Source: Paragordius varius (lineage: Eukaryota; Animalia; Nematomorpha). From it: a DNA stretch of 64,000 nucleotides. Where the stretch lies: positions 6,882,001 to 6,946,000 of the forward strand of contig OZ176056.1 in the NCBI GenBank assembly GCA_964247055.1. Direction: 5' to 3'. The position numbers and the translations under genes were made by a program. Positions 11,401 to 63,884 of the stretch are shown here, in pieces. Every line of letters begins with the position of its first letter. Position 1 is the first letter of the stretch. The notes under the pieces were generated by a model. That model did no database searches and was not told the origin of the DNA. It saw only the letters and a program-made list of their open reading frames with translations.

Positions 11401-14400
11401 TATATATATATTTCATATTAGTAATAGAATTTTAAGAATTGTTGCCTAAAAATAAAAATTGTTTTTATTTCTTACGTTTTGTCTGTATAATTTCAATTTT
11501 TACTGTAAAGATAAATATTTATCAATTTAAAAAATACTGATTTTTAGTTTTTCCATTTTTATAAATATACACTTTAAACTGAACTGTTTAAGATGCGGCC
11601 CTCTGAGACATTTAATACGCCCCACATAAATGCTATATTCCACAAGTTACAAAATTATAATAAAATTGATTTACCATTTACAGTTCAAATTCACCCTTGA
11701 AAAATTCAAAATCACCCTCAACTATTCAAATTCACCCTTGAATTTACCCTGGAACAATTTAATTTCACCCTTGAACAATTCAAAATCACCCTCGAACAAT
11801 TCGAATTCACCCTAAAAAGATTATGTGTTTTCGTAATATAACTCATTTGAAATATATCTTTATGGCATTGTTTATTATTTTTTTCAATATTATTTTTATT
11901 TTAAACAAAATTTTTATCTTTTGGAACTATAAAATATATTGATAATTTTTATTAAAAAACATATATTATTGAGGGTGACGAATTGTTCGAGCGTGAATTA
12001 GGATTGTTTAAGAGTGAATTTGAATGGTTAAAGGGTGAATTTGAATTGTAAATGGTGTATTGACGATATATATTGGTGATTAACGTTTGAGTCCAAAATG
12101 CGGCTACGAAACTCCTGATTTAAAACAATGTTTTGGTTAATATGTTGTGGTATATTTATTTCAATGTTATACATAACTTATAATAACTATTCAAAAAAAT
12201 TATTATTTAAGTAATAACAAAAAATAAAAGCAAATTAATTTTAATGTTTTCCCCCCATAAAAAGAACCATATAAAATAAATAACTTGAATTTAACATTTA
12301 TAAAATAACAAATCCCCGTTATTACATCTAACTTTTAGAATATAAGGTTTTACTTTAACTATTTATAATTATCCATTTATGTGCGAAGAATATCAAAATT
12401 TTCACTACTTACCTATATATCTTTTATGATATCAACTGGAAAATTTTTGCATTTATAAAATTATGTAATTAATTAATGTGAAAAATGTTAACTAAAATAT
12501 CCACTGACCAGATATACATTTCTTTAAATAGCTTAAATGTTTTCCCAATGAAAGATATATGCAAACTTTCAAAAACATACCAGAATTATTTGAAATGGGG
12601 GCCCAATTTGAAGGGCGGACATTGGCATACGTTATGGGTATGTTATAATTGGTGTAAGCCGATTTCTTTGATTGATGATTATTGGGTTGATAACAATTGT
12701 AATTGTTTGTACTATTGTTGGCTACAACATAGTTTTTATTGTACATGGCAGGTTTTTGCCCCATACTGTATTTCCTTGGAACTTTTGTAGCAGTAATAGA
12801 GTTGCCCTTATCATCCGTAAGGTCTCCGCTATCGTTAAGGGAGGACCAATTCGAAAATGAAGATGATTTGAGAGATAAGTTGTGCTGAAATTGAAATATT
12901 TAACATTTAAATATAAATGCAAAAGCCACAAAAAATTATAATACAGTAAATTAATTTCCCTCATAATAAACACATTTGTGTCAAGAAAAATATGACGTAT
13001 AATAAATAGTGACTCTTTTTATAATTAATTAATTGATATTTTTAATTTCAAACATTTAATTTAAAAGCCACAGAACTAATTTCAAAATCGGGGTATCGCA
13101 TGATCAGCATCTATTTATTTATCATAGGGATTTATTAGGGGGTCACTATAGGGGATCCATTGTGAACCCCTAATTACAAGCTCTGAGGATTATCATGATT
13201 TGATGATAGGACTTTGAATTTTGAAAATAAATGGTTAGACATAGGCGCTTTTCCTTTTGCATCAATTTTTTTTATAAATTTGGTGGGATATTCATTATTG
13301 AATATACTAATATGGGACAAATTTACAAGGTTTTTAAAACAGTTTAAAGGTAAATTTGACTAGGGGTTTTAAAATTTTCAAAAAATACCCATTATTTCCT
13401 TGAGATAAAACAATGTATGCTTAGTTCAATACGATAACGTAGAAAAAATGGATGGAAATAAAAAGTTTTCTTACCAAAATAGCGCACAATTCCTTATCGG
13501 ACACAAGTGAACTAGTTCCTGAACTTATAAAACTAGTTTCATCCTGCCCATTTGCGGGTGACATCTGCTTTTCATTTATTGAAACGTTTTTATCTTCGAT
13601 ACTGGAACTTTCGTCACCTAATACCATAAAAAATCGGTCCAATTACCATTTTTGTCGATCCATATATACTTTAAATACTTATTTTTTAAGTTAATTGAAT
13701 TAGAAAAATATTTTTACAGATAAACACAATACATTTGTTGAAACTCTGCATCTTCAATTAGAAATTCTAAATAAATGTGGGTTATAAAAAATGCCGCTTT
13801 ATAAAAATTGTTTTTCAATAAAAAAGGTGACTAAAAGTGAACCATTTATCTGAGCCGCAGAAAGTTTAGCACTTTTTGGTGTTAAAGGGGAGTTGCTATC
13901 CTTAACACTTTTTTGTTCGGGTTTCCCTAAATTGGCATTAATTAACAATTGTTCCAACAAAGTTTGAGCCAATGCTATATTATTATTGTTAATATCATTA
14001 TCAGTTTTATTTTCATTTGAATTATTTGAGTTTATGCCATTTCTTGTTACGCACCGGGAAGCTTTGTATTCAACATTTTTTTCGTCGCTTTTTCTGACTG
14101 CATTATCAGAGTGTATCGTTTTGGGACAAAGCTTGTTTGCACGCAATTTTCCTTGTTCGAATTCGTTTAGCAAAAAAGCCAACTTTGAGCTATCGAATTG
14201 ACTCTCCGAAGTTATGAGGGATGGTGCAGTAGCTGATCCTACTAGCTCCGTGAAAGAAAATCCCTTATTTAACCCATCCTTTTTGGCGTCGTTTAATGGT
14301 TCTCCTCCATTCTTTAATGCTAATGAATTTTGTCCCAATATGGGTTTCGATGCATTGCTTTGAATAGATTTTTTGGAGTCATACTCACTATCAGCCCTAT

Positions 14401-18900: not shown

Positions 18901-20931
18901 GGAAGAATTGGTATTAGAAAGAGAGCGAGGATTGAAAAACGACAACAACACCCGAGTTAAATATTGTCCTTTTATTCGATCAAATATACGCTGAGAATAC
19001 TTATCGTTATGGCCCGTAAAAGAATTCGATGGGTGTAAAAATGTTGACCAAGATTTACTCAATCTTAATTCATCACTGTAGTTAGTAGAGGAATCGGTTG
19101 AATGCAAAAATGGTCTATTGATTAATGTATATCAACGTGGTTTTAGATTTAAATTTTTAATATGTATATATAACCCGTAAGTCAATTAAAAACAACACTA
19201 ACAAAAATTTGAATCCTATCATTTTCAAACAATGAGATAATATTGATATTGTATTAAAATTTTATTAAACATTTATATGTGGATTTTATGCCATTCCAAA
19301 AAGGCATATTGTCATTTTTTGCGCAACAAAACTTACTAACCCATTTTCATTTATTTATAATAGTGCTTTCAGAAAAAAGTGATCAAACTTAAACTATTAC
19401 AATTCAAACCAAATAAAAAAATACTTTTCTTCTATTAAATTCGATGAAACATTTGAATGGTGATAATTATTTTGGTTATTATTATTATTATTGAACGTAT
19501 CTTGAAGTCCAGTCATCTCTTTAATAAGGCGTATGGGTAGTTCCCAAGGTTGAGAATTAAGATCACCAGCTAAAATTATATTAGGATGATGCTTAAGTGA
19601 TGATTTTTTATCAAATCCAACCGGTAGTGGTATGTTAAATGTTACACGTATAAAATTTGCAATCTCAAATGCTTGAACTAATCTATGTACGGCGTATATA
19701 TCGCATGAGCTCTCATAAACTTTTAACCAATTCATAACGACAGTAGTATTGATAGTTTCTAATACCAAAGGTTCACATTCGGACAAGCCAATAGGATTTA
19801 AATTGGCATCATAATTTGCTATGGTCTACAAATTCAAATGATATATAAAACGAATTTCAAAATAAAATTGTTAAAATTGCAAGTAACTATAATGTTTATA
19901 AGGAATGATATAACATTTAATTTATAACTATTATAATACTTCATAACTTTTTAACTTAATACCAAATTTCGCAATCTGGGAATGAAATAAAAATGGTATT
20001 CTGTTATTAATATCAATTGCTGACAATCTATACAAATAGGGTTAAAATTTGTCCATGATAAACAATTAAATATATTACTAAATTTAACACAATCAATATT
20101 TAATCATATTATCTAAATATTTTAAAATTCGTACAAGATTAAATAATTGAAAGATAAAGGGATATACTATTAATATAAAAAAAGATTTAAATTAGAAAAA
20201 CTAAATAATATTAAACATGCTTACATGAGTAAAATAAAAGTATAGCAATCGATTTTGTGGGAGTTGAATAATAGAAAGGGCTAAACATTTCCCCCCAAAC
20301 CAATCACCGTGCCATACTTTATGAGCGCGGCCATTCAGAGAAAACGTGTGCATAAGAGTATTTACGATTGGCCATCGTGAGAAAATACATAATCCACTTC
20401 CTATAACACCACTATTTTTATTTTCAATAATGCAAAAATTAACAATTAAAGAAGAGCGTTAAAATTGTAATATAAGATTAAACAATAAATTTTGATTTAT
20501 ATACACTAATACATATGGGACGTTTATTGTTTCAATGTGCTTGTTAAAAATTGTTTTTAACGAAATATATTTAATAATATACTTAAAAAATATTAAATAA
20601 AAAAATTCATCATTACCTCAAAAACTCTACCGAGTAAACGTTAAAATTTTAAGTATCTTACCTATAAAAATAATGGCAATATGGTAGGGAATCTTCACTC
20701 CATTGACAAAGAGCCTTATAATCTTCATTGGACCAAACCTTGTTAGTTAAAGAAATAATTACTTCTTGTAAAGCTACAACGTCATATTTTCCTGAAGCTA
20801 ATTCCTTACCAATACTTGTAAATCTTTCTTTTCGATAAAAACTAATATATGGTATCCCCCTAAAATTTTATATATAGTTTAAAAAAATTGGCAAAATACC
20901 AGCAATTTTGAGTTAAAATTTTGAGCTGCAT
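15925..20931 (-). CDS. SMPD2: Neutral sphingomyelinase, SMPD2/nSMase1 (Isc1)-like, ~528 aa
   Basis: Exons 20931-20900, 20859-20763, 20738-20662, 20411-20225, 19825-19425, 19114-18837, 18269-18129, 16839-16601 and 16059-15925 total 1587 nt. Motifs: MQLKILTQNCWGIPY, VVALQE|VWS, SGVIGSGLCIFSRWPI, HGDWFGGK, FTH, ILAGDLN, LDYIMY, SLSDHEGV, C-terminal hydrophobic helices and EINAL. Confidence 0.92.
17116..17724. mobile_element. Foldback-like element, subfamily B (21-bp unit ttggtccttgaacaattcaag)
   Basis: Ends are tata|ccatttgcacttca and tgaagtgcaaatgt|tata. About 6 direct units lie at 17125-17260 and about 4 inverted units at 17615-17700. It sits in an SMPD2 intron. Confidence 0.85.
17851..18107. 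mobile_element. Foldback-like element, subfamily A
   Basis: Ends are tata|ccatttacaattc and gtaaatg|tata. It shares the internal segment (gtgttttcgggctaaatataactcatt) with the other A copies. Confidence 0.8.
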
Positions 20932-33149: not shown

Positions 33150-36100
33150 ATTGGCTGAGGCCAACAAAGTCCTATAAACACCTTCCCGCGGTGTTGGCTG
33201 GGGCATGAAAATGCGCTAACGGCAGCCAGTTTTCTAATGATCTGTAAAATCATTAGTTGTACACAAGGGCATGTGTTACGTAAAAAATTGCCTCAATAAA
33301 CCATGAAGTATTAATAATATGAAAGAAAGCTAAATACCAACCTTTTAAATAACAATAATAATCCAACTTATATTTATTTTGATAATATATCTTATTTGCT
33401 CTTTTATACACTATATTTTTTATATATATTTTGAATGATAATAATTACCAAAATAACTAGGGAAATAAATAATACACTATCAGTAATAATAATAAAACAG
33501 TTCTAAAATATGCCACATGGTATGTGGGTACCCTAGTAAACAAAATATTATTTTTTAGCCAAAACAATATGGATATATGTTGCATCCAGGAGGCCAGATT
33601 GAAGGGAGAGGGAGTGAAAAACCTTGACGAATACCCATTAATAAAGGAAATGACAAGGGTCAAAGTGGTGTTGCGATTTTTATAAAAAACAACTATCGTG
33701 ATAACATAATTGATGTAATAAGACATAATCCAAGAATGATTCAAATAAAAATTTTGATTAATGACAATGTAATAAATATTGTTTCAACTTAGCACCTCAA
33801 TCTGGTGTAAGCGAAAACGAATATTGGGATATAAATTGATGAACAAAACTCTAGTAAACAAACTTTTCTTGTTGGTGATTTTAATTGCCATATTAGTAAT
33901 GATAGTAAATCATAGCAGAAATCGTGTTGGAACTCTCGATAAGATGGGTGAGAGTTTACTAGACTTTTGTAATGCAAATCAACTTATAGTTGCAAATACC
34001 CATTTTAAGAAAAAAAACCAATTAGCATATAACATATAATTCTGGTGACCACTCATCTTTGATAAACCATATTAATTTTGAAAAACATTAAGAAACATTT
34101 AACCATCAAATCTTACCATCAATCCTCTTACCAACACATGCTAACAACAGCATTTATAATTATTGAAAAAATTCGTAAGACCGTATTTCAACCACAAAAA
34201 ATAAATATAGCAAAATTAAAGCATCCAAAATTATCCTATTATACTCAAAACACAGATTTAAATTTTTAAACAAAACAAAGTTGAAATTGTATGGAAAAAT
34301 TTTAATCCACAATTCTTACATCTGCTTAAAACATTGCGGCTTTACTACACCTACGTGACAACGGAAATGTTGGTGATGTAAACATGATATAAAACCATTG
34401 TTGCGCCAAAAATGCGAAGCTTATAATAAATGAAAATAAGGAATAAAAAAGTTTATAATGATAAAAAACGAGATGTTCAAAAGGCCATTCGACGCGCGAT
34501 TAATGAAAAATCTGTTAAAATCGCCGAAAGTTTAGAAAATGACTTTAAAAACCAAACGATGTTAAAAGACTCAAAAATCTTAACAATAGAAATAAAGATG
34601 TTAAAACCATAAAATATATTCAAGATGATAATATAATAACGAATCCCTCGAAAGTCAAAGAAATTTGGAAAACGTAGAAAAACAACTCAACCAAGTTAAT
34701 CCGACCAACCGATTTAGCAAGGTTACACCAGTAGCTGGTCCCATACAAGAAATTACCATAGATGAAGTCACAACTGCAATCAATAATTAAAAAGCAATAA
34801 AGCTCCAGGCCCAAGCAGCCTGTCCGTGTACCTCATCCGACCCATCAAAAACACTGCAGAGTATCTAAAAGTCTTTAAGCAAAAATAATTACAAACCGAA
34901 CTCCCAGCGATTGGAAGAACAGCATAACCTCCATTTATAAAAATAAAGGCGATCGACTAAAACATCGTCCTACAGACCTCTGAAACTTCTAGAACATACA
35001 CTTAAATTATCGAAATTATATTAGAAAACAGGCTGAGAAAACATATAAACATAGATTCGAATCAGTTTGCATTCCGTCCAAACAGTAGCACAATAGATCC
35101 CTTGTTTGTGCTAAGACACTTGCAAGAAAAATATCTGGAAAAACAAAAGCTATACCATGTCTTTGTAGATCTGGAACATACGTTGGATCAAATACCACGC
35201 TCCACACAATGGGCACTACTTAAAAACGGAATAGAGGAACATACTATGCAAATCTTTTTACTTCTTTATAAAAATACACCAACATTAGAACCAATGTCGG
35301 GAATACCAGCAACTTCCCAACTAACGCTGGACTACATCAAGGTTCAGTCCTAAGCCCACTCATTTTTATTGCTATAATGGATGCCGCAGCGCAAGACATA
35401 AGAACCGAGTGCCCTTGGGAAATGTTATTCGCCGACGACCTCGTTATAACGACGATCATGGGATCAACTGGTAAATAACTATACCAAGTGGAAAAAATGC
35501 CTAGATCATTATGGAATGATTATAAACCCGACAAAAACACAAGTAATTATAACGGGTGAAAGTGAAACACCCAGCCCCTGCTCCGTTTGCAGTAAGGAAG
35601 TACGTTCGAATTCCATTAAATGCATATCATATCCAATGTGGGACACAAAAAGTGCTCTAACATAAAAGGCAATTTAACAAATGCAATTAATTTTAAATGT
35701 TTAAATTGTTTAACCCCAATCCACTAAAGTTACTAAACATTGATAGTCATAATATCGAATTGGTAGACTCTTTTGTTAACCTAGGAGATGTCATATCATC
35801 TCAGGGATGCCTGCAAAAGACTATTGAAAGAAGAGTAAAACAAGGTTGGATAAAATATAATCAGTTAAAATATGTTTTCCAAAACAAAAATGTTAACAAT
35901 AATGAAGGGTATCCTCACAAAGCAGGAATAAGACCAGCTCTTACCTATGGTTCTGAAACTTGGGCATTAAACAAAACTAATCAAACAAAACTCCTAACTA
36001 GTGAGAGCCGAATACTCAAAAGCTGCTTTCGTACACCAAAAATACCAACTTACATTAAAACAAACAAATAGATTGCGTCTCTACCGTCATACTCAGAGAA

Positions 36101-46760: not shown

Positions 46761-47635
46761 CTATGTTTAATTAAATTATAACCGAAATAACTTTCAAAAT
46801 AGTAGTTTATTTATAAAATTAAGCTCTGGTATACAAAACTAGCCCAAAAGGTAAATTAGGACAAAAAAATAAAAAGTTAATGAATTTTCAAATGTGACTG
46901 TGCTGTTTTGATTACTTTGAATGCACTTATGTCATTACTCTACCTATTGGTAAACTTTAATTAGATACATTTGCTTATAATTTAGATTACAGTATGCACA
47001 TTAATGTTAGCAAATTGACCATTTTGGCCATTAGGCAAGACAGTAGCGTATGAGTAAAAAAGAAATGGATAAAATAACATTTTTTTCTATCTTGCAACAT
47101 GGAATTATTTTATGGACTTAATTTATCATACGCCACTGTATTACCGATTGGCAAACGTGTGATGTAAATTACCACATACTTTATATATATGCATTGCAAA
47201 TTTACAAATATATATCATAGGTATATATAAATTAAAATAAGATTGATTAACTAGAAACATATGAAAAAATAATCGCCCAATGCTAAGGTTTTATGTTAGA
47301 AAAAATGCAAAAATTTGACTGGATTTTATGTTTTGGTTTCATAAAAAAATTATTTTCATCTCTTATATTACATAATATTTAATTTATTTAATTCTAAAAT
47401 CAAATTCAATAAAATTTAATAAAATCAGCTCCAATAAGTTTTATAAAAGAAATAACAGGGCGCTTTAACATAGTAAAATAAATCGTTACTTTTATAAACA
47501 TGGTCATTTCGCTAACTTATCGCTTTAAATCACTAATATTTTACAAATTAAATTTTATCCTCGTTTGATTTGATAAAACAGCAAAAAAATAAAAGAGCAT
47601 ATATTCATATTAAAGTTAATGGTAAAGTTAATTTA

Positions 47636-47807
47636 CAGTGGCGTATGGAGTAAAAGATTGTTAGTGCAAAATAGAAAAAAAAATGTTTTTTTTAAAAAAA
47701 CAAGGGGACATTATACATATGTGTATTTACAACTAAAATTGTTTTTTTAAAAAAAACATTTTTTTATTCTATTTTGCACTAACAATCTTTTATTCCATAC
47801 GCCACTG
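47636..47807. mobile_element. 172-bp hairpin MITE (Tc1/mariner type, TA TSD, CAGTGGCGTATG termini)
   Basis: ta|cagtggcgtatggagtaaaagattgttagtgcaaaatag...ctattttgcactaacaatcttttattccatacgccactg|ta, with arms of about 70 bp. Shorter relatives are at 47041-47138 and 26537-26654. Confidence 0.9.
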
Positions 47808-48333
47808 TATCTAATAAATATTTAATTTTCAGTTATATTTTATTTGGGATAAAGAAAAAATGTTAATGCACAAAAATATAAAATGGTGAAAATGATGTGT
47901 TGTAAAAGCATTTATAACTAGTGAAAAAAGCAGTAAAACCACACATTATTTTATATTTTTTAATTTTGTTTTATTTTTTACATTATCCTGAAAAAGGTTA
48001 TACAAATATAACCGAAAATTAAATATGTTTAAATATTTATACGCTTTTTTGCCATTTACTTTAACTATATATAAAAGTACTATTCATAGTAGTTTAATTG
48101 GCAAAAACGTATTTATATTGAAATTCAGTAACCCCCTTCGTCATAGAGTTTGATGCGAGAAATATACATGGCTATAAATTTTATGGAGATTGGTTTCAGA
48201 TTATTTATTAATCACTGGACTAATTGTTTGTGGGATGCGATTAATGTATTTCATAATATTACAAAATTAAATCACTAGCGCATAATTAATATTTAAAATT
48301 ATATTATAACCCAATGATGATGTATGTGTTTAA

Positions 48334-51300
48334 TTAGATGTTATAAGTACAATTTATGCTTGGAATTTTTACATGTTTTCCATATACATCACACTTGACC
48401 ACTGAACAATACAATGGTCTGTCATCATAGAGAATCATTTTAGTGGATAATTGATCCTTTCTTATGGTGGTTGGGATGTTATAAAAGCCTTGAGATACGT
48501 CCCATATCTTTGGAAAATCTATAACGCGTAAAAAACATAGGTTACTTATGTTTCTTAGAATGAATTTCTCAATTAAAATCAATTAATTTGGGACAGGACA
48601 CCCGATAACAAATTCTTATCGATAGAGTAAATTGGTTGCTATTTTATATGGAATTAATTATACGTCAACCAATAAATTCGGAGTGCACAACAACATAGGA
48701 TTGATTTGGTTTATTTATTAAAAAAATGAATAAAATGATTTATTTAAAATTGTTTAATAAAAATTTTAGAATGATTTTGAAAACTCAAACTAAAATTCCG
48801 TTTTTAAAAAGGATGTTTGAATACACATATGCATATGTTAAATATATGTTAAAATATATGGGAATATATAATACTATAAATATTTTTAAAGTTAAAAACC
48901 ACCATATACAAAATAAATGTATAGCCAAATGCGTTTGAATGCCCGAGGTATTTACAAATGTGTTCAAGTGATGGTTAAAATATTTTAATAATACCACTAT
49001 TTTGCCCTACGGTTGACCACCATATTTTTTTGGGCATTAAAAAATATTTAAAAATGTTAAAAAATAAAAAAAATGGATTTCAATCAAAAAGTTAGGATTA
49101 TTTGGAAGGTGTCTAAAATCGAACTTAAAGAAAAAACTATTAAAGCAGCCCGTGAAGATATTTGTGTTGGCACCTCTGTTTTACCTTTCTATGCCAAATA
49201 AACTTGATAATACATCAGTGTATATAAAATATACACTGAGATATATCATATAATATTTCATTACAAAAGGTAAACTAAAATTAATTTTTTAAAAAGTAAT
49301 GTCACACTGAGCTTATTCATGTTATATGTAGAAGTAAGTTAAGTTAATTAGTAAACAGACACATTCTCGTAAACTCAAAAGTTTAATTATTAATATAATA
49401 ACGCCCTAGTTAAATAATACTTATGAGTTAGTTTGTATTTTACCATTTATTTTATCTTTTAATTTTTTGGTTTCTCAGAAAAAGTTTATCTTCGGAACTC
49501 AGGAATAGGTACTTTAATTTGTTAAAAATAAAAAATAATATTAATAAATATATTTAAAAACAATTTATCACACATAACTTTTACCCTAGATAGTGAATAT
49601 TTATATTATAATAATCATCATTTCTTAAGTTTTCTATGGCTTGGGGCATAAATAAAAATATTTGATCAATTTGTAAAATACTAACTTAATAAGATTTTTT
49701 TAAGTCACTAGGAACAATAAAATAATTACTTAATAAATAAGTATCTAATTGCATGCCTTATTTTGTGTTAACAAAAAATTATTGGTTTGTGCCTTTTAAT
49801 ATTATAATAAATTATTAAAGTTGAAAAATACTGTGTGAGTCGCAATCTTTATTGGGTACATACGGTTTTAGCGTTATATTTACAATATTTTTCCTTTGTT
49901 TTACTATGATGTAGGATGGAGGATCATTTAAAAAGCTAATGGCAACTTCATCATTGTAATCCTTTATGTCATCCAATTGAAGTATATTCAATCCATCATC
50001 CAAAACAACTATGTCCTCAGTATAACTTAAAGGGACGTGAATAGTAATATAATCGTTTGCAACATATTCATATGCTAGGGATTCTAAATTAATAAATACA
50101 AAAAATAAACAATAGAAGTGTTTAGCTTATAATAATTTATATATCTTTCTAGATATTTCATTCATTATTTGTGAATAAATATGCCGTTTCTAATGATTAT
50201 TTTTTATTATAGGTAAATTTAGCAGTAAAATTTTTGCGTCTTTATAAAAATAGTTTATTTTGAAAAATAGGAGACGATTATATATTGACATATAGTAGAA
50301 TTACTACCGAAAATGCGTCTCTTTTAATATTTTATTAATAAAACATTTTATTAATAAAACATTTTATTAATTAAACGCAACATTGTTTCAGCAAACCCAA
50401 CATTTTTCAAGCAAAAGTAACTATTTTAATTGTAAACATTGTTTTTTTTCATTTTATGACAATATTAATTAAGGGTTTACTTGATTTTAAGTACAATTAG
50501 CGAATTTATATATGAATTTTATTGTTTCCCAGTTGGTCCTTATATTTTTTTCGTATACTCATAATTTTAGTGAGTGTTTACTAATTTTATTTAGCCTAAC
50601 TTTATTTAAAGTATTTTTCATCTAAAATATACATTAATTTAAATTAACTTTTTTTATATTGTACTTCCAATTCTATAATAGTATATTAACAATTTAATTA
50701 TAATTTTAAAATACATAATTGATTAGGTTATGGAATTACATCCCTATTCATTTGCAATATAAATAATAAGTAAAAATTTTTTGGCTTTATTGCGTTTTGT
50801 CCGTATAATATCAATTTAAACTGTAATAAGCTTGTATAGTCTCTTATTAATTCATTATTTTAATTCTCAACATTTGTTCAAATTTATCGTTAAAGTATAT
50901 TTTAAGTTGCTACTAAAAGTATAAATATTCATTTATAATTGCAGAAAGTTGTTTGTTTGACATATTGGCCAATTAAACAAGTGGCATATAATAAAAATGT
51001 GTTTTGTCCATTTGAAATTTAATGTTGCATAAATTAAATTGTATTTCAACTAATTCCTTTTTACCCATTAGTTACTGTATTAATTGGCTAAAAATAATTG
51101 CATTGACCAACATTATTGTACACACTGTGCCGGGGGTGTCAGGCCCTAAAGGACCCCAAAATGTTTCTGCAGCCAGCAGAAAATTGGAAAAATACCAAAT
51201 GCATTTTATAATTTAAAAAATGGTAATTACGAAAACTAATAATAAATCTTGGCAATGAAGTGGTAAAAACTGTTGAAATGAATCGTTATTTTGTATTTTT

Positions 51301-54300
51301 GGTATGTTTTTCAGTCTTGTGTGAAAATATTAAAAAATTTTGTTGTTGCCCACATATATTTTCGAATGCGTCCTGTCGGATTTTTTGAGATAAAAATGTC
51401 GCCTTTGAAGACATTTGTGTTGCACACCCCTGCTCGAGATTTCAGCAGGAACCGGTTTAGTTGTATTAGAAACAACTTTTTTCAATCCATTAGCAACTAC
51501 CACGATTTCGGTTCCAATATTTTAAATATACTCGAATTCTCAAATTTTTAGGAACCAGTTTGTTTCAACCACCTCCTTACGATGTTGTCAATTTTCTTAC
51601 ATATATATCTAGCTTTCACTTGAAAAGAATCACAATCATTATTATTTAGGTAATTTTTTTTAATTCATAGATTACCTTACAATATTTATTAAACTTCCAA
51701 ATATATGAAGACTTATAACTTAAGAAAAATGAAAATACTAAGCAAGGTTGTGTCTTCTTATATTTCCTTAAAAACTTAATTATAGCGTTTACCATAAAGA
51801 AAGGTGGTACTTAAATCCAGGTCCTGGGGCCGCATGAATTCCTAAAAAACTGATTTTTCTGGTCACAAAGATTGCAAAAACATTAAAATAAGGTTTTCAT
51901 TAGCGGTACGCTATAAGGCTACAACACTTTATTATGTATTAAATTAGTGCCATTTAGTTAAAATTACAAAACTATTATTATATTGAAATTTTTGATAAAT
52001 CTTATGAAAAGTCAGGGAGACCAAAATGGGATTGGTTCGGTTCCGGACATGCTTACGGTTCCGTTTCAAACATTTTAGAATACCTCGGTTCCGATTCCAC
52101 TGTTCTCCACCCAAATCGAAGTTCTGATTTCAACTATCCCGATCTTGTATTGCATAAAAGAAAAATTGACAAAAAATACAGCGCTGTATATCTTGGTTTA
52201 AGAAATAAATAAATTTTTATTAAACGAATAATCTTTTGTAAAAGCTCGATAGTAGTAACGAAAACTATCAAAAAAGATTTATGGATTTAGAAGCGAAGCT
52301 TGCATTTCTGGCGCCTGAAACATGAATCGTGATCTTCCACCCTCTCTTTAAGACCCCTTGCATTTTAAAAAATAATCAAATTCAAACCGTAGTCATGATC
52401 ACTCAAAAATGTATGTATTATTTAGAATAATAACTTTTATATTTTTTTTTTAAAAAAAAAAATTAAAATCCGACGCCCCTTCAACTATGACGCATGGTTC
52501 AGTCTCCCTTTTCCCCTCTAGCCACGCCTCTAGAAGCAGCTAATGGTAATTATTACCTTAAAAATTCATCCCGATTAAATCGCCTAATAAACGTTCAGAA
52601 TTATGTTTTCCGAAAACATCAGAGTTTTTGAGGGGCTTTTGGTTTTGTACCTTAAGACTTCATTAAGAAAAATTACATTTTTGTGGTAAAAATCGAAATT
52701 CGTTTACATTATGCTATATATTTTTTTTACTGAAGAACGCTTTATTATAAACAAACAATATCATTAAAATAATCATTAACTATTCTAGAAGGGAACAATA
52801 TTTTTTATTTTTTATGTTGAGAGTTTCGAATGATTGCCTCTCCCTTCTGAAATTATCTAGCATTTCTAAAACAAACGCAAAAATGCCGAGATTTCACGAT
52901 AATTAATATTTAGATTATGGCAACAAAAGAATATTTTTAAAATGACATTTTGATTAAAAATTTAATGTGAGTAAAATTTTGTAAAATCTTATTTCTCGCT
53001 TATTTGGAAACATAAACGTTAAGAAACGGCTTATAGGTATTTTATATGAAAGATAAACTTCTCTATCACCTCAAAAATTTTTTAGAGGTTTGTTTGCATT
53101 TAAATTCGGGTGAATTTCGGTGAAGAACACATATTATACCTCAACATAAATAAAAGAACAAAATTTATAGCTAAAATCCGAGAATAGTAATGTTTGCGCG
53201 ATAGAATTGGAAAAATGTTTATATAATGTCTTAAATTAGTGATTCCTACCCTTTTTTGTTTAAGGTCCACAATTGAAAAAAATTTGCATATATGTGTTTC
53301 ATCAAAATATTTTTTAAAAAAATGAGCCAAAAATGAGAATAGCTTTTTTAACCTCTAAATAACACTTAATTTTTTATTGGATATTTTTATAATTTCTGTC
53401 GTAGAAATTTTTAGCAAGGTAGCAGCTTTGTCTTTGCTTTTGGGTTCTAGCACCTTAATTTTAATGAAATTTTGAATAAGAAGATATATTATTTTTCAAT
53501 ATTTTATGTTTAATTAAAAAGTTAAAATAAATATACTTACTATTTCGACTATCTTCTTCATACACTATATTATATTGATATAAGAAATTATTTTTATTAA
53601 ATTCCTGCATGAGCAAAAATATTGAATAAAAAGATTAGAATGGACTCAAAAATTTTGACTGGTCTTCTCATTTTTGCGGCCTTGAACTCATACGGGGTGT
53701 GACATAAAAAGCTTAGCATGACAAATTTCCCAAAATATACGAGAATTTGTCAAATGTAGATTTTAAACATAAAATAGTAATTAAAAATATGATTAGTAAA
53801 TATTTATGAAATATCAATTATATTCAGATGTTAATAATCAAGTATTTGATTATTTTAGTTTGGGCCGCACATAATATTGAAAGGGTTACATGTAAGTGGT
53901 CAGTTGAACACTATAGTAACTTTTATTTTATCAAAAATTTATTTTTTTCGTTATATAGGTATAACTATTTGGTAATGAATGAAAAAAACAAGAGTATTGT
54001 AATTCTTATACTTTTTTGATGAATATGATATCGTAAATACTATAGAATTTGTTTTTATCCTTTTTTTATCAAATATTTATACTTATTTAACACTCAGATA
54101 CAACACTTTCTTTTAGTCCTTCTAATCAAATTGGTTGGATACCACAGGCCTGCTTAAAATTAAATACTTTAAAAATTAGAGAAGGAATTGAAATGGCAAA
54201 ATTTTGCTCTACTATAACTTTAATAAACCGAAATATATAAAAAACTTTTAAAAAAAATACTTGATATTATTTATTTTAAGGTAAAACCCAAAGGTAAAAA

Positions 54301-57300
54301 TTTAGTCAACGTGACATGTGTGCATTGGCTTAATTGACATTATCCAAATAAACCACTTTTTCTATTTATATCAATGTTAGATGTGATTTAAATAAAAAAG
54401 AACACGATATTTTGCAAAAATTATACAAAGTAAAAATGACGTCATGGAACTTTTTTTAAAACGAAATTTAATTAAGCTATTATATCTTATTTATATAATT
54501 ATTAGGATAGAAGAGTTTTTTAAAAGTTTTAACTTTAATTTTATGTGGGATAATTAGATACCCCAAATCGAATCGAAGTGTTAAGAAAAAAATAAATTTT
54601 TAATATGATGCATGACTGTATTTATTAATATGTTGATAAAAATTTTCTTTTATTTATACAAATCATTATTCTTATAATATCTAAATTTACAACGAATTAC
54701 AGAGTAGATTAAAATATATTGACTAAACTTAAAAATATAACAATTTTTTTAAGACATTTAATTTTTTATTAAAATTTAATTCAACATTGATATAAAATAA
54801 ACAATTGTGCTATTTATATTTTACAGTTTAAGAAGTATGTTTAAAAAAAAAATATTTCAATGTTTTTACGTTTGTTTGTTTAATTTTAATTTTAGTGTAT
54901 ATAGAATATGTATGCATTTTAATAGTTGCTTATTTCACACTATAGTTCGCAACATACTAATGTATGTAAAAAACTACATATTGAATAAAAAAAATTGTCC
55001 TTTCGTTTTTCCATGCATACTACTGTGTTAATTGCCCAACTTTAGTGTGATATAAGTCACCATTAAATTACACATACTAGACAACAAATTTTGGCTTTTT
55101 TTAAACTGCCATTCTTGTACATTTAAATTTATTTCATTAAAGTACATAATTAGTATATCTGAAAAAAAAATTGGTCTGACACCTAAGAATTTTATATTGA
55201 AGCTTATCAATAATTTTTTGGCCTTAATTTAATATTAAACCCGAATTTTTGAAATTTAAAAGTTTTAGATATGAAGCCATGTATTTTATATTATTCGAAA
55301 GAGCGTGAAAAACTATACAGTGGCGTATGCAGTAAAAGATTGTTAGTGCAAAATAATCTTAATGAACACAAAACAGGGGGACAATTTTCATATATTAATT
55401 ATCATTCAGTCCTATTTATAAACATATCCATAATATCCCCCTCATTAAGATTATTTTGCACTAACAATCTTTTACTGCATACGCTACTGTATCTTTCATT
55501 AGTGTCATTTATGTATATCACGGATGTAAAAGTTATTTGGGTTTATATGATCGAAATTTTCAACCCTTATATAGGTCAAAAATTTTCACAGTCAAACTAG
55601 CTTGAAAATCAGATAAATTATTTTAATATAATTATTAGGGTTATATTAGTATTTAATTTAAAAAAATGTTTGAAAAAGCTTTTGGTTTGCCTTTTTAATA
55701 AAAATTATTATTATTATAAATATTTTACCTAGTGACTAAAATGCATAGTTATAACTGTAAATTTATTACATAATGGCTATAAAAGATCAAAAATACCTTA
55801 AAGTTTGTTTTAATCCTTAAAATTTCCAAATTATTAGCCTCGTAAATAAAATAAATTAATATTGATGAGATGGTAATTTTTAATAAAACAAAAAACTTAA
55901 AAATGGCTGTTTTGAGTGACTTAAAAGCGATAAAAAAATGTCTTAATCAAAAGAATTTTCTTGTGTTATCTTTTTGGACATTCATCACCATTTGGACAAA
56001 GTTTGAGCTATTTTCATCCATTAGTTTTAAAAATCTATTAATTAAAAAAAATGCTCTCGCTTCGCGCGTTTGTCGCTCTCTGTGTCCAACTGTCGATGTA
56101 ATACATATTAGTATGCATTTTATAGAGTTTTGATTACTCTTTCGAATGATATATTACAAATGGGCATTACTTGTATATTTAAGAAAAACATTTATTAGTA
56201 AAATTTTGGTAAAGAGGACGCATAATAAAAAAAATAGTTATACAAAATTCTTACGTGGAGTTATAATTTTTATTTCCGATTTACGATATTAAATATCAGA
56301 AAATGCAAAAAACTCGAGTGGCAGAAAAATTTGTTGTCCAGTGTAATTCTGTAATTTTCAACATGCAAGAGTTTAGAGAGTACAATATTTGTGTTTTTCT
56401 GTTTTACCCAAAAAAATCGTTAATTTGATTTGAGTAACATTTTATATATAAAGTAATTTTAAACAAAAAAAATGAAATAACACGACATCAATTAGTTTCC
56501 ATTTGAAAGTTGGGTATCTTATAAATATCTTTAATATTTTGTCAGTTTTGAAAATTACACATAGTTTTATATAGAGAATGTATCACTAATTATTATTGTG
56601 GATAACTTATTGTGCCCTTGTAAGCTTAGTGCCGTTACATGTATATAAATAATCAAGGTATAAATAGAAAATTAATAATAATAAATATGTTATAAACTTA
56701 CAGGGAGATTTGGTAATTTCAATAATAAATATATTATAAACTTACAGGGAGATTTGGTAATTTCAATTTCTTCAATCATAATACCCTGATAAAATGCATA
56801 TAATTTTGTTTTAGCACCAATGGGGATATTTGTCATATTAATGACTCGACTTTTAGCAATATCTAGGGTATAATTTTGAAGCGACGAATAAAAATGTATA
56901 ATACATTTATCACGGTTGTTGCATAAACTGTCTAGATTATTACGAAAAATAAATTTGTCCCCATATATACTGAGTGAATACGTTTTGGCCGTTAATTTAT
57001 TTTTTATAATGTGAACCAATTTATCAGGACGATGTGCATTTCGGTATGATACATTAATATCTTCTTTTTCATCAATTAAGTAATTAGAATCAATAGTATA
57101 GGGTTTATTATTTATTATTACGAATGAGTCTTTCGTCAATACATGAAAATAATTGGTTAAATTGGGTTTCATAGTAGAGAATGAGTCGTAGTTTATATAT
57201 GAGGTTTCCGTTACAGCTAGTATATAGGTATGGTTGTGATTTATTATAGTGAATTGATGAAAAATGGATTGGAGAAATTATGTTTAATAATCTATTTAGT

Positions 57301-60300
57301 TTATATTTTACTAGCAACTATTATAGTTACTTTAACAAAATTTTTTATGGAATCTGCCAACCCCAAATAAATACAAAAGGTGATTTATTATAAACATTTT
57401 TAAGCTAAAAAAATAAATTACCTTCCAAAGTTACAATTCCATACGCTAATACTTCTCTATTCATACTCAAACAATAAGGGCCTTCCAAATCAACCTTCAT
57501 TAGGGGTTGTTTTTTCAATAAATTATCATAGTTGACATTGGGTATTTCAAACCGGTAATTATTAATTTTCAATTGGATATTCTTTTTGCCCTCAAATTTA
57601 GGAGCACCCATTAATACACCGTTGAAAAGATATGCTTTTAAATTCTTTTCCTGACTGCTATTTTTATCTGTTATATATATGAAAGAGAAAAAAAAACATT
57701 TAAAAAATTTAATGTTATAGTCATATATATTTTCATATAAATCCAATTAAAAAGTACTTATTGAAAAATAACGCTCTCCTAATAAAATGTCTTGGTTAAC
57801 AAGACCAATTGTTCCATTTACACAATTGTAAACTAAATTCAGATCCATTATCCTGACTCGTACAGCCGTACTATTAGGTTTCAATTCAAATCCTTGTGCA
57901 TAATTGTTCCCATTGATGCGTATATGACTTGTAGACAAATTTATTTGCATATTAGTGGGAGATAAATAGAAAATAGCGTCCATATTTTCACTCATATCCC
58001 ATGTTATGGTATTTGTTTCTACAACTAACAATATAAAATGATTACTATGGTTATCAATGCATGCATCAGCTAAATAAATAATGTATTCTGACCATTATCA
58101 GTATAAAGCAGTAATCCTTAGTCAAAAAATTTTACCATAAGAAAAAAAGTCGTTTTCGATCATCCCTGGTAAGTTAAAATATATTCTCAAAAATTAAAAA
58201 TTTTCAATTCATTTTTAAAATGTTTTTCCTACCAAGGGTTGCGATTCGTGTTCCAATTATTTTGTCGAAAAAAGTTTCTGATTTTGTTTATATTAAGGTG
58301 GTTCCCAAAAAGAGGAGGAGGGGACGACGCTTTTGGATATGTACTATTTTTTGATAATTGGTTTATTGAATATTATTTTTAAATCTTAATTATTAAGTTA
58401 TAGTTAAAGTATTAAGAAGTAATCATTGTTGTATTTTTAAATTTACACATATTGTATCTATTATTTTTCTCATGATGATTCTTATCATTTATTTAATTAA
58501 AAAAATAAAATAGCCTTAAAGCTAATAAATGGTTTTAAGTGTAAAGTATTTCTTAGTCTTGTCCATTCTGTAAAGTATATATTTTCTCAAAAAATGTATT
58601 TTAAACCTTTTGAACAAGTATTTATGAGATTGATTTAATTAAAAAAATAATTTAGAAACAAATTGAAGGTTATTGATCTCAGGTACAAATTATCAAGATT
58701 TGTCCCTGTTATGGAAAATATATTTTAACATTTGCAGATACAAGCATTTCATCGATTATTTCGAATACAATAATATTGCATTTTTTGCTTTTTTTGGGTG
58801 GAGGATCGGGGAGGGGGGAAAACGACAAATTTTTTTTCCATTTGATGGGGCCTGAAAAAAAATGGTTGAAAACCATTGGATTTATAGTTATAATATCGAT
58901 TAAATTAACGTATAATTCCAATTGAATTCAAATAATGGGTACAAGATTAAATATTTTAGGTTATAATTATTTATAAGATGTAAAAAACATTCTTTAATAT
59001 TTTTTTAATGCGTCGAACAAACCTTTTATTTACAGCAAGGTTTAACCTAATTTTATGTTTTTTCTCAGTTGGAGCCGGAACCGGCTCTATTGGGATGAAA
59101 CCAACCCGGTTCCGGTTCCAATCGTTCAGGAACCAGCCTGGTTCCTTTCCACCTCCTTAATTACTGGTTTCCATATGATATTTATTATAAAAATTTCATT
59201 AAAATTTGATATTCTTTAAACCTAAAACTAAGCCTCTATTATTTTATTAGTGATATTGTCTAAATTTTGGGCGATTCGGCTGTTTAAGGAAAAACCTATA
59301 TTCTTATCTTAAGTTCATTATAATACATAAGTTCGTATATATAGGTTTCTGCTGAAAGGAGTTTTTTTCACCCTTATTTTCGACCTGGGAAGCAGTTTGA
59401 CCACCGATTGGCTTAGTGCAATAATTAAAGTTAAATAAAAATTTTTTTTAGATGCCATACTTAATTTAACACTTACACTAGTCAACAAGGTTTTGCACCA
59501 TCCCATTATTTTTGCATTTTCTGATACCTAATGGCATGGAAAGGCCAAAACAAAAAAGAAAATTGAGGCCACCAATAGGATTTTTCCAAAATTTACTTTT
59601 TAAATTTGTATTTAATTCAAAAATAACAATCATTCCTCGTGTACATATGTTTAAAAATTCAAACAAGCAAGTCGATACAAGTAATATTCCATGCATGGAT
59701 AACAAATTCTAGGCATTAAATGAGATACTAAACAAGCTAAGAGCCAAAGTATTAAAAATTTAAAAGAGGCTTATGTATAGTGTGATAGATATGGGCGGCT
59801 GCACACGCTCTGCATATCCCCCAAGCGATCCTATAATTATGCCAGATATGGCAAAGATAACAATAAGTAATCGTAAAGTCCGATAAGAGAGACTTGCAAG
59901 CAAAATCTGGCAAATTGACATGTCCAATTAACCAATTTACAGAATAAAGTTAGATAAATTCTACAATTAAATTAAATATAAATTAGGTAAATACAAATGG
60001 TCCAACCCCATAACAGTAAATTCTACTAAAAGTGGCTACACAACATCTATCTGAAATTCAAAATACAAAACAACCAATAATTTCAAAAAAATAAGGTATA
60101 TCCACTAGGTATAAATAAAGGATTTTTTATAAGAACCAACTCAAGAGAAAAAGTCTAATAAGTACTCGAAAGAACGAAATCTAACAAAAAAAATATAGCC
60201 TATCTGAAAGCCGAAGGTTTAAACCATATAATGCCTTTTTTAGTATTTTGTTAAAAAAAATTTATATGTGTTAAAAATTCACTTGAAAAAAAAGACTAAA

Positions 60301-63300
60301 TTTTGACGTTTAAGTCTGTACTATTTTTTTCTCTCTGATATTTAAATGACATATTTATATTCAAAAGATAGAGTTTAAAACGCTTTATTAAATGATATTA
60401 GATTTATAATATAATAACATTTTATTATAAAGTTATATTTAATTTTTTCTCGATTTTCTCTTGTTTTTGAGAAATTGAAAAACCTATAAAATTTCAAATT
60501 CTGATTGGCGGGATCAAAAATTTTTTCAAATTCGGTTTTAAAACACTGAAATTAGTCATAATTTAAAATGTTTGAGTGGTGGTGCTTAAAAATGTCCAAA
60601 TTTGTCGACTAGTGTTATATATACCTTTGTACTTATACATTTTCCTATTATATTTTTATAATTTGTTTCATTTTCTCTACTATATTTTTTCCACTATATA
60701 TTTGGAATATAATAAATTATTTGATTAATAATTGCTAATAATTTGGTTGTATTATTATAATTATATTGTAAGGAAATCATTTTATCAAAAGTCAAGAACC
60801 GCAAATGGAACCAGTTCTAAATGTAAAGAACCAGTTCCGGACTTAATTTCTAAAGGACCAACGCGGTTCCGGTTCCACTCGTTTTTTTGTCCGGTTGCAA
60901 GCCCTTATTTTCTCTTTATTTTATTGCTTAAAATATTTGTACGTCACAACGGCAAAACTAAATATAAATCTTTTGGCCTAAAAATTGTTTATGCTTTACG
61001 TGATTTCTTATAACCAAAGTATGGATCCGAATTTTTAAATCAGATTTGTATTCAGCTTTTTATAATCATCAGTTAAATTTATATTCTAACTTAATATGAA
61101 ATTTTTTTAATTTAAACCATTCCATACTATTACAAAATAATTATTTATCAGCGTCAATTAGTTGTAATTATATAAAAAATGGATCCGTGTGCATAAAGAT
61201 CAAATGATTGATTATATGAAAAAAATAAATTACTATATAATTTATGTTCTCCTAATAATACATCTTTGAACTTGAGCTGAATGTCATAAGATTTATAGGT
61301 AGTTAAATTATGATTATTGATTTTGACTTCAACTCTTCCATTTTTTATATCCATATCAAATTGATGATTTTGGCCATTTATTATTAGATCACTTTTCGTA
61401 ATGTTTACATCAGGGATTGGTGTGCGTGGGAGGTGGAAATTGACCACGATATCCCTTCTATCTCTCCATATTGTATCTTTTTCTGTAACATTTAGTATTT
61501 ATTAAAGGAATCATAAAAAAATAAATTATATGAATGGTCGCAAGTTCGATTTGCGTCGTGTACGCACAAAATTAACTATTTAATTATTATTATTATTATT
61601 ATTATTTGATGGCTGAAACTATGGAAAGAATGGCAAAATGATAAATTTAGTGGAATTCATGAAAAATATTTAATTAATACACTAATAAGCGTAATCACAA
61701 AACTCCATTTTATGGCTTATTAAGCTAAATTTTATTTATGACTTATCATAATTATCCCAGCAAAACGAATTTATTAAGAGAAGCTCTTAAAGCAAACATT
61801 TAAAATAGTAAATATCGCTTTTTAAATGTTATATAAAGTTTCCAAAATCGGCGTCATTGGCAGTCGCATGACTTCTGCCATAATAAGCATTTGATATAAA
61901 TAAAACATCGTCCTTAAACTAATTATTAGATCATGTCTTTCTTTTCGTTAATGTTCATTTAATACCTTTAGAATAAAACTTTTAATGGGCCGCAAAACAA
62001 AATTTACTTATCTTAAGGGCCAAATACTGATAAAATTTAAATGGTGTTTGACATATTTGCATATGTTAAACTTCAAGTACGTTAGGGACACTTTAGTTTA
62101 ATAAACACTGTTTTAGAAAGAGAGAGACTTTATATTCTTACTACTTTAAAAATAATTGATTGTAGTGTTAAATTTTATAATTAATTTCAAGTTTTTTATG
62201 AGGATCATATGCAGATGCCATGTATCTTTTGATATCGCATTCATTTTAGGGGGTTAAATTTTTGTATATTACAGTAAAAATGAATTTATACGGACAAAAC
62301 GTAAAATAAATAATTTTATCTAAAAGACAACCATACTTTTTTAAACCTTGGTTTTTCTTACATTATATATTTAATGACCCCGGGTAAAATTGATTGTGTT
62401 ACCAATATACATGTCTAATAAATACTTTGCAAATTTTGAACAATGAGCAATAAAAAAAACAGATTTAAAAAATATGGTTGTTTTTTAGGAAAAAAAATTT
62501 TTGTCTTTATATTTTTACATTTTGTCCGTATAATTCCAATTTTTACTGTATATATTCTGATGTTTTCCGTAATCTAAAAATACACTATACAAAAATAATT
62601 CTGTTGGCAATCATTGTAAGCCTTTCCTCCCTAAAACATAAAGCCTTTTTGATGTTAGGGGTAGTCTTTACAAAAAAATTTGCGCTAACGTCAGCAGATA
62701 CATATATTTTTTATAGACTAGTGTGCGAAAAATTGCTATAGTTGTGTCTAGGCCTATTGGCTGAGATAAATTTGTTGTTTTTTATCTTGATATATTTTAA
62801 ACTGAAGCTCTGGGATATTGATATAACTACATGTTTTTATACTATATGTGTTTGGCAACATGTATGGAAAAACAACAAAATCTTGAAAAATTACATTTTT
62901 TCCTATGTCATAATACATCTACTGTATTACATTTTAACCATAATGTGAAGCCAGCATAAGTGTGCAAACTGTGCAATTATAGGTCACCACAGCAATTTTT
63001 AAGAAATGTTTTCTGAGTATAAACGATTTTTTACATATATTTTCTAATAATTTTTAAACTTAATTTAAAATTTGCATAATAACATTTTCTTATCATTTTT
63101 TAATGTTTTGAGACATTGCACATGCTCCTTTCCTATGAACCCAGTAATTACCGCAACTTAAGGGTCACATGTGGCAATAAGTTGCTAGGGTCTTCAAATT
63201 ATTAAATTTATGTACTAATTTAGGTTATAATATGCAAATGTGAAAAATAGTTATCAAGTTTTAATTAATATTATGGCCGGAATAATATTATTTGGTGAGT

Positions 63301-63884
63301 ACCATTGTATTAAGCTATTTATTTCAAAATAATCCAATCTTTTTGAGTTATTTGGGAAACTTCATTTATGAAGTCCCAATTTTTTAAAAAAAATTCTTAC
63401 ATATTTATAAATTTTTTGTTTAAAAACATAGGGTGTTAAGTTTAGATTAATAAATTACAATATTATTATATATTATACGGGGGGCAGTATCTGTTAATTT
63501 ATTAATTTAAACTGAAATATGAGGCTGTTCAGGTTATGCACTAAAAATTAAATTAATTTTTATAAAATTTTTTGTAATATATATATATATATATACAACA
63601 TAAAAATATAAAAAACCCGTTATCCAAATTTCATATTGGTAGGAATTGGTTGATGTATTACAGGTGTAATTTCCGCTATAATTCACCGCTCTGGGTATTA
63701 AAACTTCATTGTTAAAATTATTAATTTTATGATTCCACGATTGACAAAAATTAGCCTTAATGGGGATGTTTCTACCGTCGTAAGCGGAACGAAACAAAAA
63801 TATATATTTTTGTTCTGGTCCAATACCTAAAATTGGACTTAGGATAATAAATATTGGTATTAAAAAATAACGAATTTGAAACAT
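48334..63884 (-). CDS. Unrecognised secreted, N-glycosylated modular protein (~692 aa, 9 exons, all introns phase 1)
   Basis: Exons 63884-63617, 61482-61234, 58024-57758, 57667-57422, 57310-57122, 57063-56746, 55182-55078, 50083-49832 and 48518-48334 total 2079 nt. All boundaries are GT-AG, every internal exon length is a multiple of 3, and no junction creates a stop. The N-terminus MFQIRYFLIPIFIILSPILG looks like a signal peptide. Linking the last three exons to the first six is the least certain part. Confidence 0.7.
55318..55489. mobile_element. 172-bp hairpin MITE, second full copy of the CAGTGGCGTATG family
   Basis: ta|cagtggcgtatgcagtaaaagattgttagtgcaaaataatcttaatga...tcattaagattattttgcactaacaatcttttactgcatacgctactg|ta. 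Confidence 0.9.
56678..56765. repeat. 44-bp tandem duplication (43/44 identical) spanning an exon end and its 5' splice site
   Basis: The unit ataataaatat(g/a)ttataaacttacagggagatttggtaatttca occurs twice. Confidence 0.95.
59060..59160. repeat. Dispersed GGAACC/GGTTCC-rich repeat family (probable hAT-type MITE ends)
   Basis: Clustered ggaaccgg/ccggttcc motifs ending in ccacctcc. Related patches are at about 22655-22800, 51440-51580, 52030-52110 and 60795-60900. A VSAERSF-like hAT dimerisation motif lies nearby on + at about 59345-59365. Confidence 0.45.

Follow-up and report, generated by a model that had tools for sequence, protein, structure and literature searches.

What kind of protein is built from a string of exons that all begin and end in the same intron phase, and does it belong to any known family? 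This question is raised by a gene in a 64,000-nucleotide stretch of the genome of the hairworm Paragordius varius (positions 6,882,001 to 6,946,000 of contig OZ176056.1), which we refer to as the window (C7:6882001-6946000 in an assembly of 110.6 Mb and 44 contigs). An earlier note on this DNA had described the gene as an orphan in which no family motif could be recognized, and as the best candidate in the window for an undescribed system. Our analysis leads to a different answer. The gene probably encodes a secreted, N-glycosylated, modular extracellular protein with a diverged immunoglobulin-like (Ig-like) head, and it would be a member of a small, fast-evolving family restricted to this genome. 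With an Ig motif in exon 1 and an Ig-like model for exon 3, the family is new but its kind, that of secreted Ig-like proteins, is well known, and it is not a new system.

The gene lies on the minus strand of the window, which is very AT-rich (22-34% GC), and extends from an ATG at 63884 to a stop codon at 48336-48334. Seven exons were read from the sequence, with their borders determined by script; they keep the numbers given to them in the earlier note (1, 2, 3, 4, 5, 8 and 9). Searches and fold predictions were run exon by exon. The features of the gene are as follows.

Exon 1: 63617..63884, minus strand; ATG, a signal-like hydrophobic start and a putative short Ig-like domain, closed by a phase-1 donor
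Exon 2: 61234..61482, minus strand; phase 1-1 module of 83 codons, an ancient duplicate of the exon-3 module that is absent from the relatives
Exon 3: 57758..58024, minus strand; phase 1-1 module, modelled as an Ig-like beta-sandwich of eight strands
Exon 4: 57422..57667, minus strand; phase 1-1 module of 82 codons, common to two paralogues on contig C8
Exon 5: 56746..57216, minus strand; phase 1-1 module of 157 codons, common to the two C8 paralogues, with a consensus GTAAGT donor
44-nucleotide tandem duplication: 56677..56764, minus strand; repeats the final 19 nucleotides of exon 5 along with the GTAAGT donor
Candidate exon 8: 49832..50083, minus strand; phase 1-1 module of 84 codons, without a methionine and without a paralogue
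Candidate last exon 9: 48334..48518, minus strand; phase-1 acceptor, 61 codons, three cysteines and a TAA stop

All acceptors in this model are AG and all donors are GT, and each of the six introns is in phase 1, splitting a codon after its first base. The internal exons (249, 267, 246, 471 and 252 nucleotides) are bounded by phase-1 introns throughout and have lengths divisible by three, in agreement with the symmetric phase 1-1 modules described previously. Of the nine exons and eight phase-1 introns that had been claimed, the phase was right for every intron and the count was not, as only seven exons and six introns were found. Two further exons were sought between 50083 and 56746 and in the other introns, using open stretches, module profiles and codon usage, and none was detected. 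The seven-exon product would have ~645 residues, or ~500 if it ended after exon 5.

The strongest evidence that exons 1, 3, 4 and 5 constitute one gene is the presence of collinear paralogues elsewhere in the genome. Single exons searched against the whole genome matched only themselves. Two loci on contig C8 emerged when exon 1 was used by itself and when exons 2 and 3 were combined in a profile.

C8 paralogue one: C8:5123233-5129431, plus strand; four exons
C8 paralogue two: C8:5584485-5590637, minus strand; four exons

Both loci have exons of types 1, 3, 4 and 5 in the same order, with phase-1 introns at exactly aligned positions, and both likewise begin with a signal-like sequence. Their identity to the gene in the window is 22-42%, with conserved residues and every intron position retained. 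The exon-4 alignment (22-25% identity) includes a conserved “Y-C-L ... A-Y-G”, and this module has only three copies genome-wide; the exon-5 alignment is at 22-26% identity. Compared with the gene in the window, the C8 paralogues have no duplicated exon 2 and no tail of exons 8 and 9, and they stop right after the exon-5 module. A counterpart of exon 2 was sought in both and not found. Exon 2 does match exon 3, with 31% identity across 78 residues (E 2e-5), which supports it as an exon and makes it an ancient copy of that module that arose within the gene. A short fragment close to the first C8 paralogue, C8:5079776-5079868, corresponds to positions 104-134 of the exon-5 profile but has a TAA stop inside it, and is probably the decayed remnant of another gene of the family.

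Wider profiles of exon 1 revealed three more, longer genes on C7, the contig of the window.

Long C7 relative: starts near C7:6678054, plus strand
Long C7 relative: starts near C7:3836899, minus strand
Long C7 relative: starts near C7:2241849, minus strand

These genes are like ours at the head and different in the body: they have only the exon-1 and exon-3 types in common with it, followed by six other module types (M3-M8), and profiles of M3-M8 tried against exons 4, 5, 8 and 9 gave no match. When exon 1 was aligned with its five relatives, every one was seen to end at a W-I-x-G donor. In two of the distant C7 relatives the first two introns are also in phase 1, the first of them at the same W-I-x-G position. 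Just upstream of one distant family member, an open stretch at C7:6676713-6676922 has a Kunitz/BPTI-like cysteine pattern and is apparently an exon of some other secreted protein.

The description of the gene as an orphan is thus not upheld, since at least five related genes (two on C8 and three on C7) are present in the same genome. Genome-wide profile searches recovered only six genes and one broken fragment, numbers that should be taken as minima. When the profiles of the module types were compared among themselves, no relationship emerged, which indicates that, apart from exons 2 and 3, the module types are distinct and not repeats. A two-module head that is joined to differing bodies fits exon shuffling through same-phase introns.

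A modular gene with such relatives could still be a decaying or silent copy that has no present function. The donor of exon 1 (GTTTTT) is weak, and the nearest pair of paralogues, the two on C8, is near neutral by its ratio of nonsynonymous to synonymous substitution rates (dN/dS 0.77). We nevertheless regard loss of function as very unlikely. All seven exons are open and their splice sites are intact, and the position of the weak donor is kept in five relatives. Despite the low identity to its paralogues, the gene has preserved the conserved residues and each intron position. In a composition so rich in potential stop codons, neutral drift breaks reading frames fast: for the much smaller divergence of the C8 pair, 9.6 stop codons would be expected under the observed substitution spectrum and 0 were seen (0/5000 simulations). 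The locus is most likely a working modular gene.

The C8 paralogues are live, fast-changing genes. Their identity in exons, 81-87%, does not exceed that of most aligned introns and flanks (74-88%), and their exon indels appear to keep the frame because each exon translates free of stops with its borders kept. Judged from the sequences, this tempo is what would be expected if the products served in binding or recognition and the selection acting on them kept changing.

What, then, are the modules? Exon 1 has Cys47, Trp50 and Cys75, with the latter in a stretch “L-I-P ... N-Y-S-G-N-Y-T-C” that matches the Ig F-strand motif D/N-x-G/S-x-Y-x-C. The absence of any recognized family motif in the previous description is therefore contradicted by exon 1, which bears the Ig hallmark “N-x-S-G-x-Y-x-C”. 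Cys47, Y73 and C75 are invariant across the five aligned relatives. When the exon-1 profile was compared with the Protein Data Bank (PDB), 22 of the 24 best matches were receptors of the immunoglobulin superfamily (IgSF), of C2 type and including Fc receptors and CEACAM, and they aligned on the E-F motif.

The module of exon 3 is predicted to be a very diverged Ig-like beta-sandwich. An AlphaFold2 model from a four-sequence alignment had eight strands, with a predicted local distance difference test score (pLDDT) of 87.1 and a predicted template modelling score (pTM) of 0.79. The best Foldseek matches of this model were Ig domains of titin, NCAM, Dscam and gp130, with template modelling (TM) scores of up to 0.60. 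A search independent of Foldseek, against ~48,000 representative PDB chains, gave a top 50 filled almost entirely by Ig-type domains (I-set and V-set). The top structural matches were obscurin, TREM2, gp130 and titin (Z 7.6-6.5, over 76-86 of 88 residues), with a root-mean-square deviation of 2.6-3.0 Å for most entries and sequence identities of 4-13%. The exon-3 module holds a single cysteine and does not have the cysteine pair of strands B and F. The suggestion of diverged beta-sandwich modules in the earlier note is borne out by the model of exon 3.

Several points weigh against our interpretation of the gene as a whole. The gene model was drawn from genomic sequence alone, and the donor of exon 1 is weak, as noted above. 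The two cysteines of exon 1 are only 28 residues apart, which is short for an Ig domain, and its PDB matches are individually not significant (best E 0.009). Z scores of 7-8, such as those of exon 3, by themselves indicate only a common arrangement of strands. The AlphaFold2 model of exon 5 was unreliable (pLDDT 46) and was left out of the fold search. A Pfam search of the seven exons and eight paralogue exons produced nothing above cut-off, and none of the Ig, I-set, V-set, C2-set, fn3 or other sandwich families was reported even at E up to 1. Two findings on the tail of the gene, given below, count in the same direction.

An alternative explanation is that the modules represent a truly new fold or system, and that the likeness to Ig domains is a generic resemblance among beta-sandwiches. 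The Pfam result, the null profile-profile comparisons among module types, an exon-3 Z of 7.6 that falls in a grey zone, and the lack of an assigned fold for exons 4, 5, 8 and 9 are all compatible with this explanation. We consider it improbable, however, for three reasons. Exon 1 has a specific Ig F-strand signature, and its profile selects IgSF receptors almost exclusively. In the exon-3 model, 76-82 of 88 residues can be superposed at 2.6-2.9 Å on the I-set and V-set domains that occupy the top 50 of ~48,000 chains, and the modest Z is offset by a uniform list of matches with coverage of nearly the whole module. Lastly, one domain per phase 1-1 exon, as seen here, is the classic gene layout of the IgSF.

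One candidate from Pfam was considered and rejected. Exon 2 scored 22.1 bits with Pectate_lyase_5 (PF20585), which is below the cut-off of 24.3, and the homologous exon 3 is modelled as a sandwich and not as a beta-helix.

The Ig-like interpretation can also be viewed against well-characterized I-set and C2-set members of the IgSF (titin, obscurin, Fc receptors, CEACAM and domain D1 of gp130). The exon-3 model resembles these in size, topology and its eight-strand sandwich, and exon 1 resembles them in the motif of strands E and F and, less clearly, in its upstream cysteine with a tryptophan after it. The gene likewise has one domain per exon with phase-1 introns, and its setting, which we infer to be secreted and glycosylated, is similar. 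In contrast to those proteins, it falls below every Pfam cut-off for Ig domains, exon 3 is without the disulphide pair, the cysteines of exon 1 are separated by only 28 residues, and exons 4, 5, 8 and 9 could not be matched to a fold.

The product would be secreted and N-glycosylated, judging from the features of its predicted sequence. The only hydrophobic 19-residue window in the protein covers residues 4-22 of exon 1 (Kyte-Doolittle hydropathy 1.99), which supports the signal-peptide-like N-terminus that had been noted before. The remaining exons do not exceed 1.0, and no transmembrane segment was seen in a Kyte-Doolittle scan of all seven, also in accord with the previous description. The predicted protein has 15 N-X-S/T sequons, about twice the expectation from within-exon shuffles (7.4 +/- 2.4, P about 0.003). 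The excess over these shuffles is therefore not merely a consequence of the high asparagine content of an AT-rich genome. More than ten sequons of eleven kinds had been listed, and all of those kinds are present in our count. Cysteines are sparse, as had been stated, with 10 among the 639 in-frame residues.

Exons 8 and 9 are not proven parts of the gene, since the C8 paralogues terminate at the point that corresponds to the end of exon 5. In both of the four-exon C8 paralogues, a stop codon occurs two codons past the residue that is aligned to the end of exon 5. This would fit an arrangement of two transcription units, in which the family gene ends just past exon 5, and exons 8 and 9 are part of another gene or are chance open stretches. 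The exon-5 donor would then be read through for 19 more codons to a stop at 56692-56690. Consistent with this, exons 8 and 9 each found only themselves in genome-wide searches, so that no paralogue of either was recovered, and profiles of the family modules tried against them gave no match. The codon score of exon 9 (0.065) is marginal, and chance alone should yield roughly one open stretch of 82 codons in this region at 25% GC, as estimated from base composition.

We nevertheless think this arrangement doubtful, as other features of the tail are harder to reconcile with it. The donor that closes exon 5 is a consensus GTAAGT and lies in phase 1, as does the acceptor of exon 8, and the phase-1 donor of exon 8 fits exon 9. 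Exon 8 must be internal and needs an upstream exon, because it has no methionine, and there is no other coding-like stretch between exons 5 and 8. Its codon log-odds (0.169 per codon) is above those of all 41 non-exon open stretches to the right of 38 kb, and is the highest among the open stretches of the right part of the window. The seven-exon model, with exons 8 and 9 included, is therefore the one that we favor, with some reservation.

The tandem duplication at the end of exon 5 comprises 2.1 copies of a 44-nucleotide unit that are 97% identical, and only the first copy keeps phase 1. This array is the only one of its kind at any junction of the gene. By eye, exons 8 and 9 had been likened to the last module of the long C7 relatives, and neither BLAST nor profiles supported the comparison.

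As far as the searched databases show, the family appears to be restricted to one genome. No credible relative of exon 5 was found by HMMER among 1.8 billion representative sequences. The sole match (E 1.7e-5) was to a bacterial-type protein with a four-fold repeat, which matched one 24-residue stretch four times, and we attribute it to chance similarity boosted by repetition. ESM Atlas searches with exons 5 and 8 returned scores and recognition values at noise level, and sequence comparisons with the PDB, for which exons 5, 8 and 9 as well as profiles of exons 3, 4 and 5 were used, yielded nothing significant. The exon-5 profile had no relative among metagenome contigs, and the exon-1 profile had none in a word-indexed collection. 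The earlier view of the protein as lineage-specific is in keeping with these searches of representatives, metagenomes and the word-indexed collection, in which the gene's own product is absent as well, and close relatives of the animal may simply be unrepresented. A survey of the literature on secreted or Ig families of hairworms produced nothing relevant.

The surroundings of the gene were also inspected. The earlier note had placed it in a compartment rich in transposable elements and unlike the left part of the window. This distinction is not clear, as short interspersed repeats are present in both halves. Two elements that resemble miniature inverted-repeat transposable elements are situated in introns of the gene. 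One, at 55315-55492, has 51-nucleotide arms that are 98% complementary and 76 nucleotides apart; the other, at 62276-62543, has 31-nucleotide arms (87%) and is related to copies at 11242-11521 and 47634-47812. Part of the reverse transcriptase of a retrotransposon without long terminal repeats (non-LTR) was observed at 35697-36071, with further open stretches at 35006-35662, the sequence “...YGSETW...” and a GC content of ~33% that is higher than its surroundings. In the left part of the window, a neutral-sphingomyelinase-like coding sequence (“ILAGDLNSQP”) is on the minus strand at 19397-19786 and at about 20739. The hexamer CAGCTG is in none of the seven exons, occurs at most once per 10-kb locus of the relatives, and has 2 copies in the window versus 2.7 expected. 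Scans of the window for tRNAs and Rfam families were empty.

How might such a protein be made and assembled? The hydrophobic start of exon 1 would route the chain into the secretory pathway, where the sequons would be glycosylated, and the product, which has no membrane anchor, would be released. Exon 1 would supply a short Ig-like domain with its Cys ... S-G-x-Y-x-C signature, and exons 2 and 3 a highly diverged Ig-like beta-sandwich in duplicate. Two further beta-rich modules would come from exons 4 and 5, and a probable tail that is peculiar to this gene from exons 8 and 9. Across the family, the same head (the exon-1 and exon-3 types) would have been combined with varied bodies via exon shuffling and duplication through same-phase introns. 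The role of such a protein would most likely be extracellular binding or recognition.

Animals have many secreted Ig-like families, and these results add one more, which is restricted to a single lineage and has at least six genes. The family is also a small and clean case in which same-phase introns permit both the duplication of a module, as in exon 2, and the joining of one head to different bodies. For annotation of the genome, the analysis provides a checked exon model, together with a caution about the last two exons, which are unproven.

A more specific proposal is that the family consists of rapidly diversifying secreted Ig-like parasite effectors, which are released into the host to bind host molecules. 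We consider this to be unlikely. If it were true, same-phase exons would let a constant two-module head recombine with different bodies, and the gene in the window would have acquired a duplicated module of its own as well as a new tail. More generally, fast-evolving secreted binding proteins of a parasitic hairworm may be natural candidates for contact with the host.

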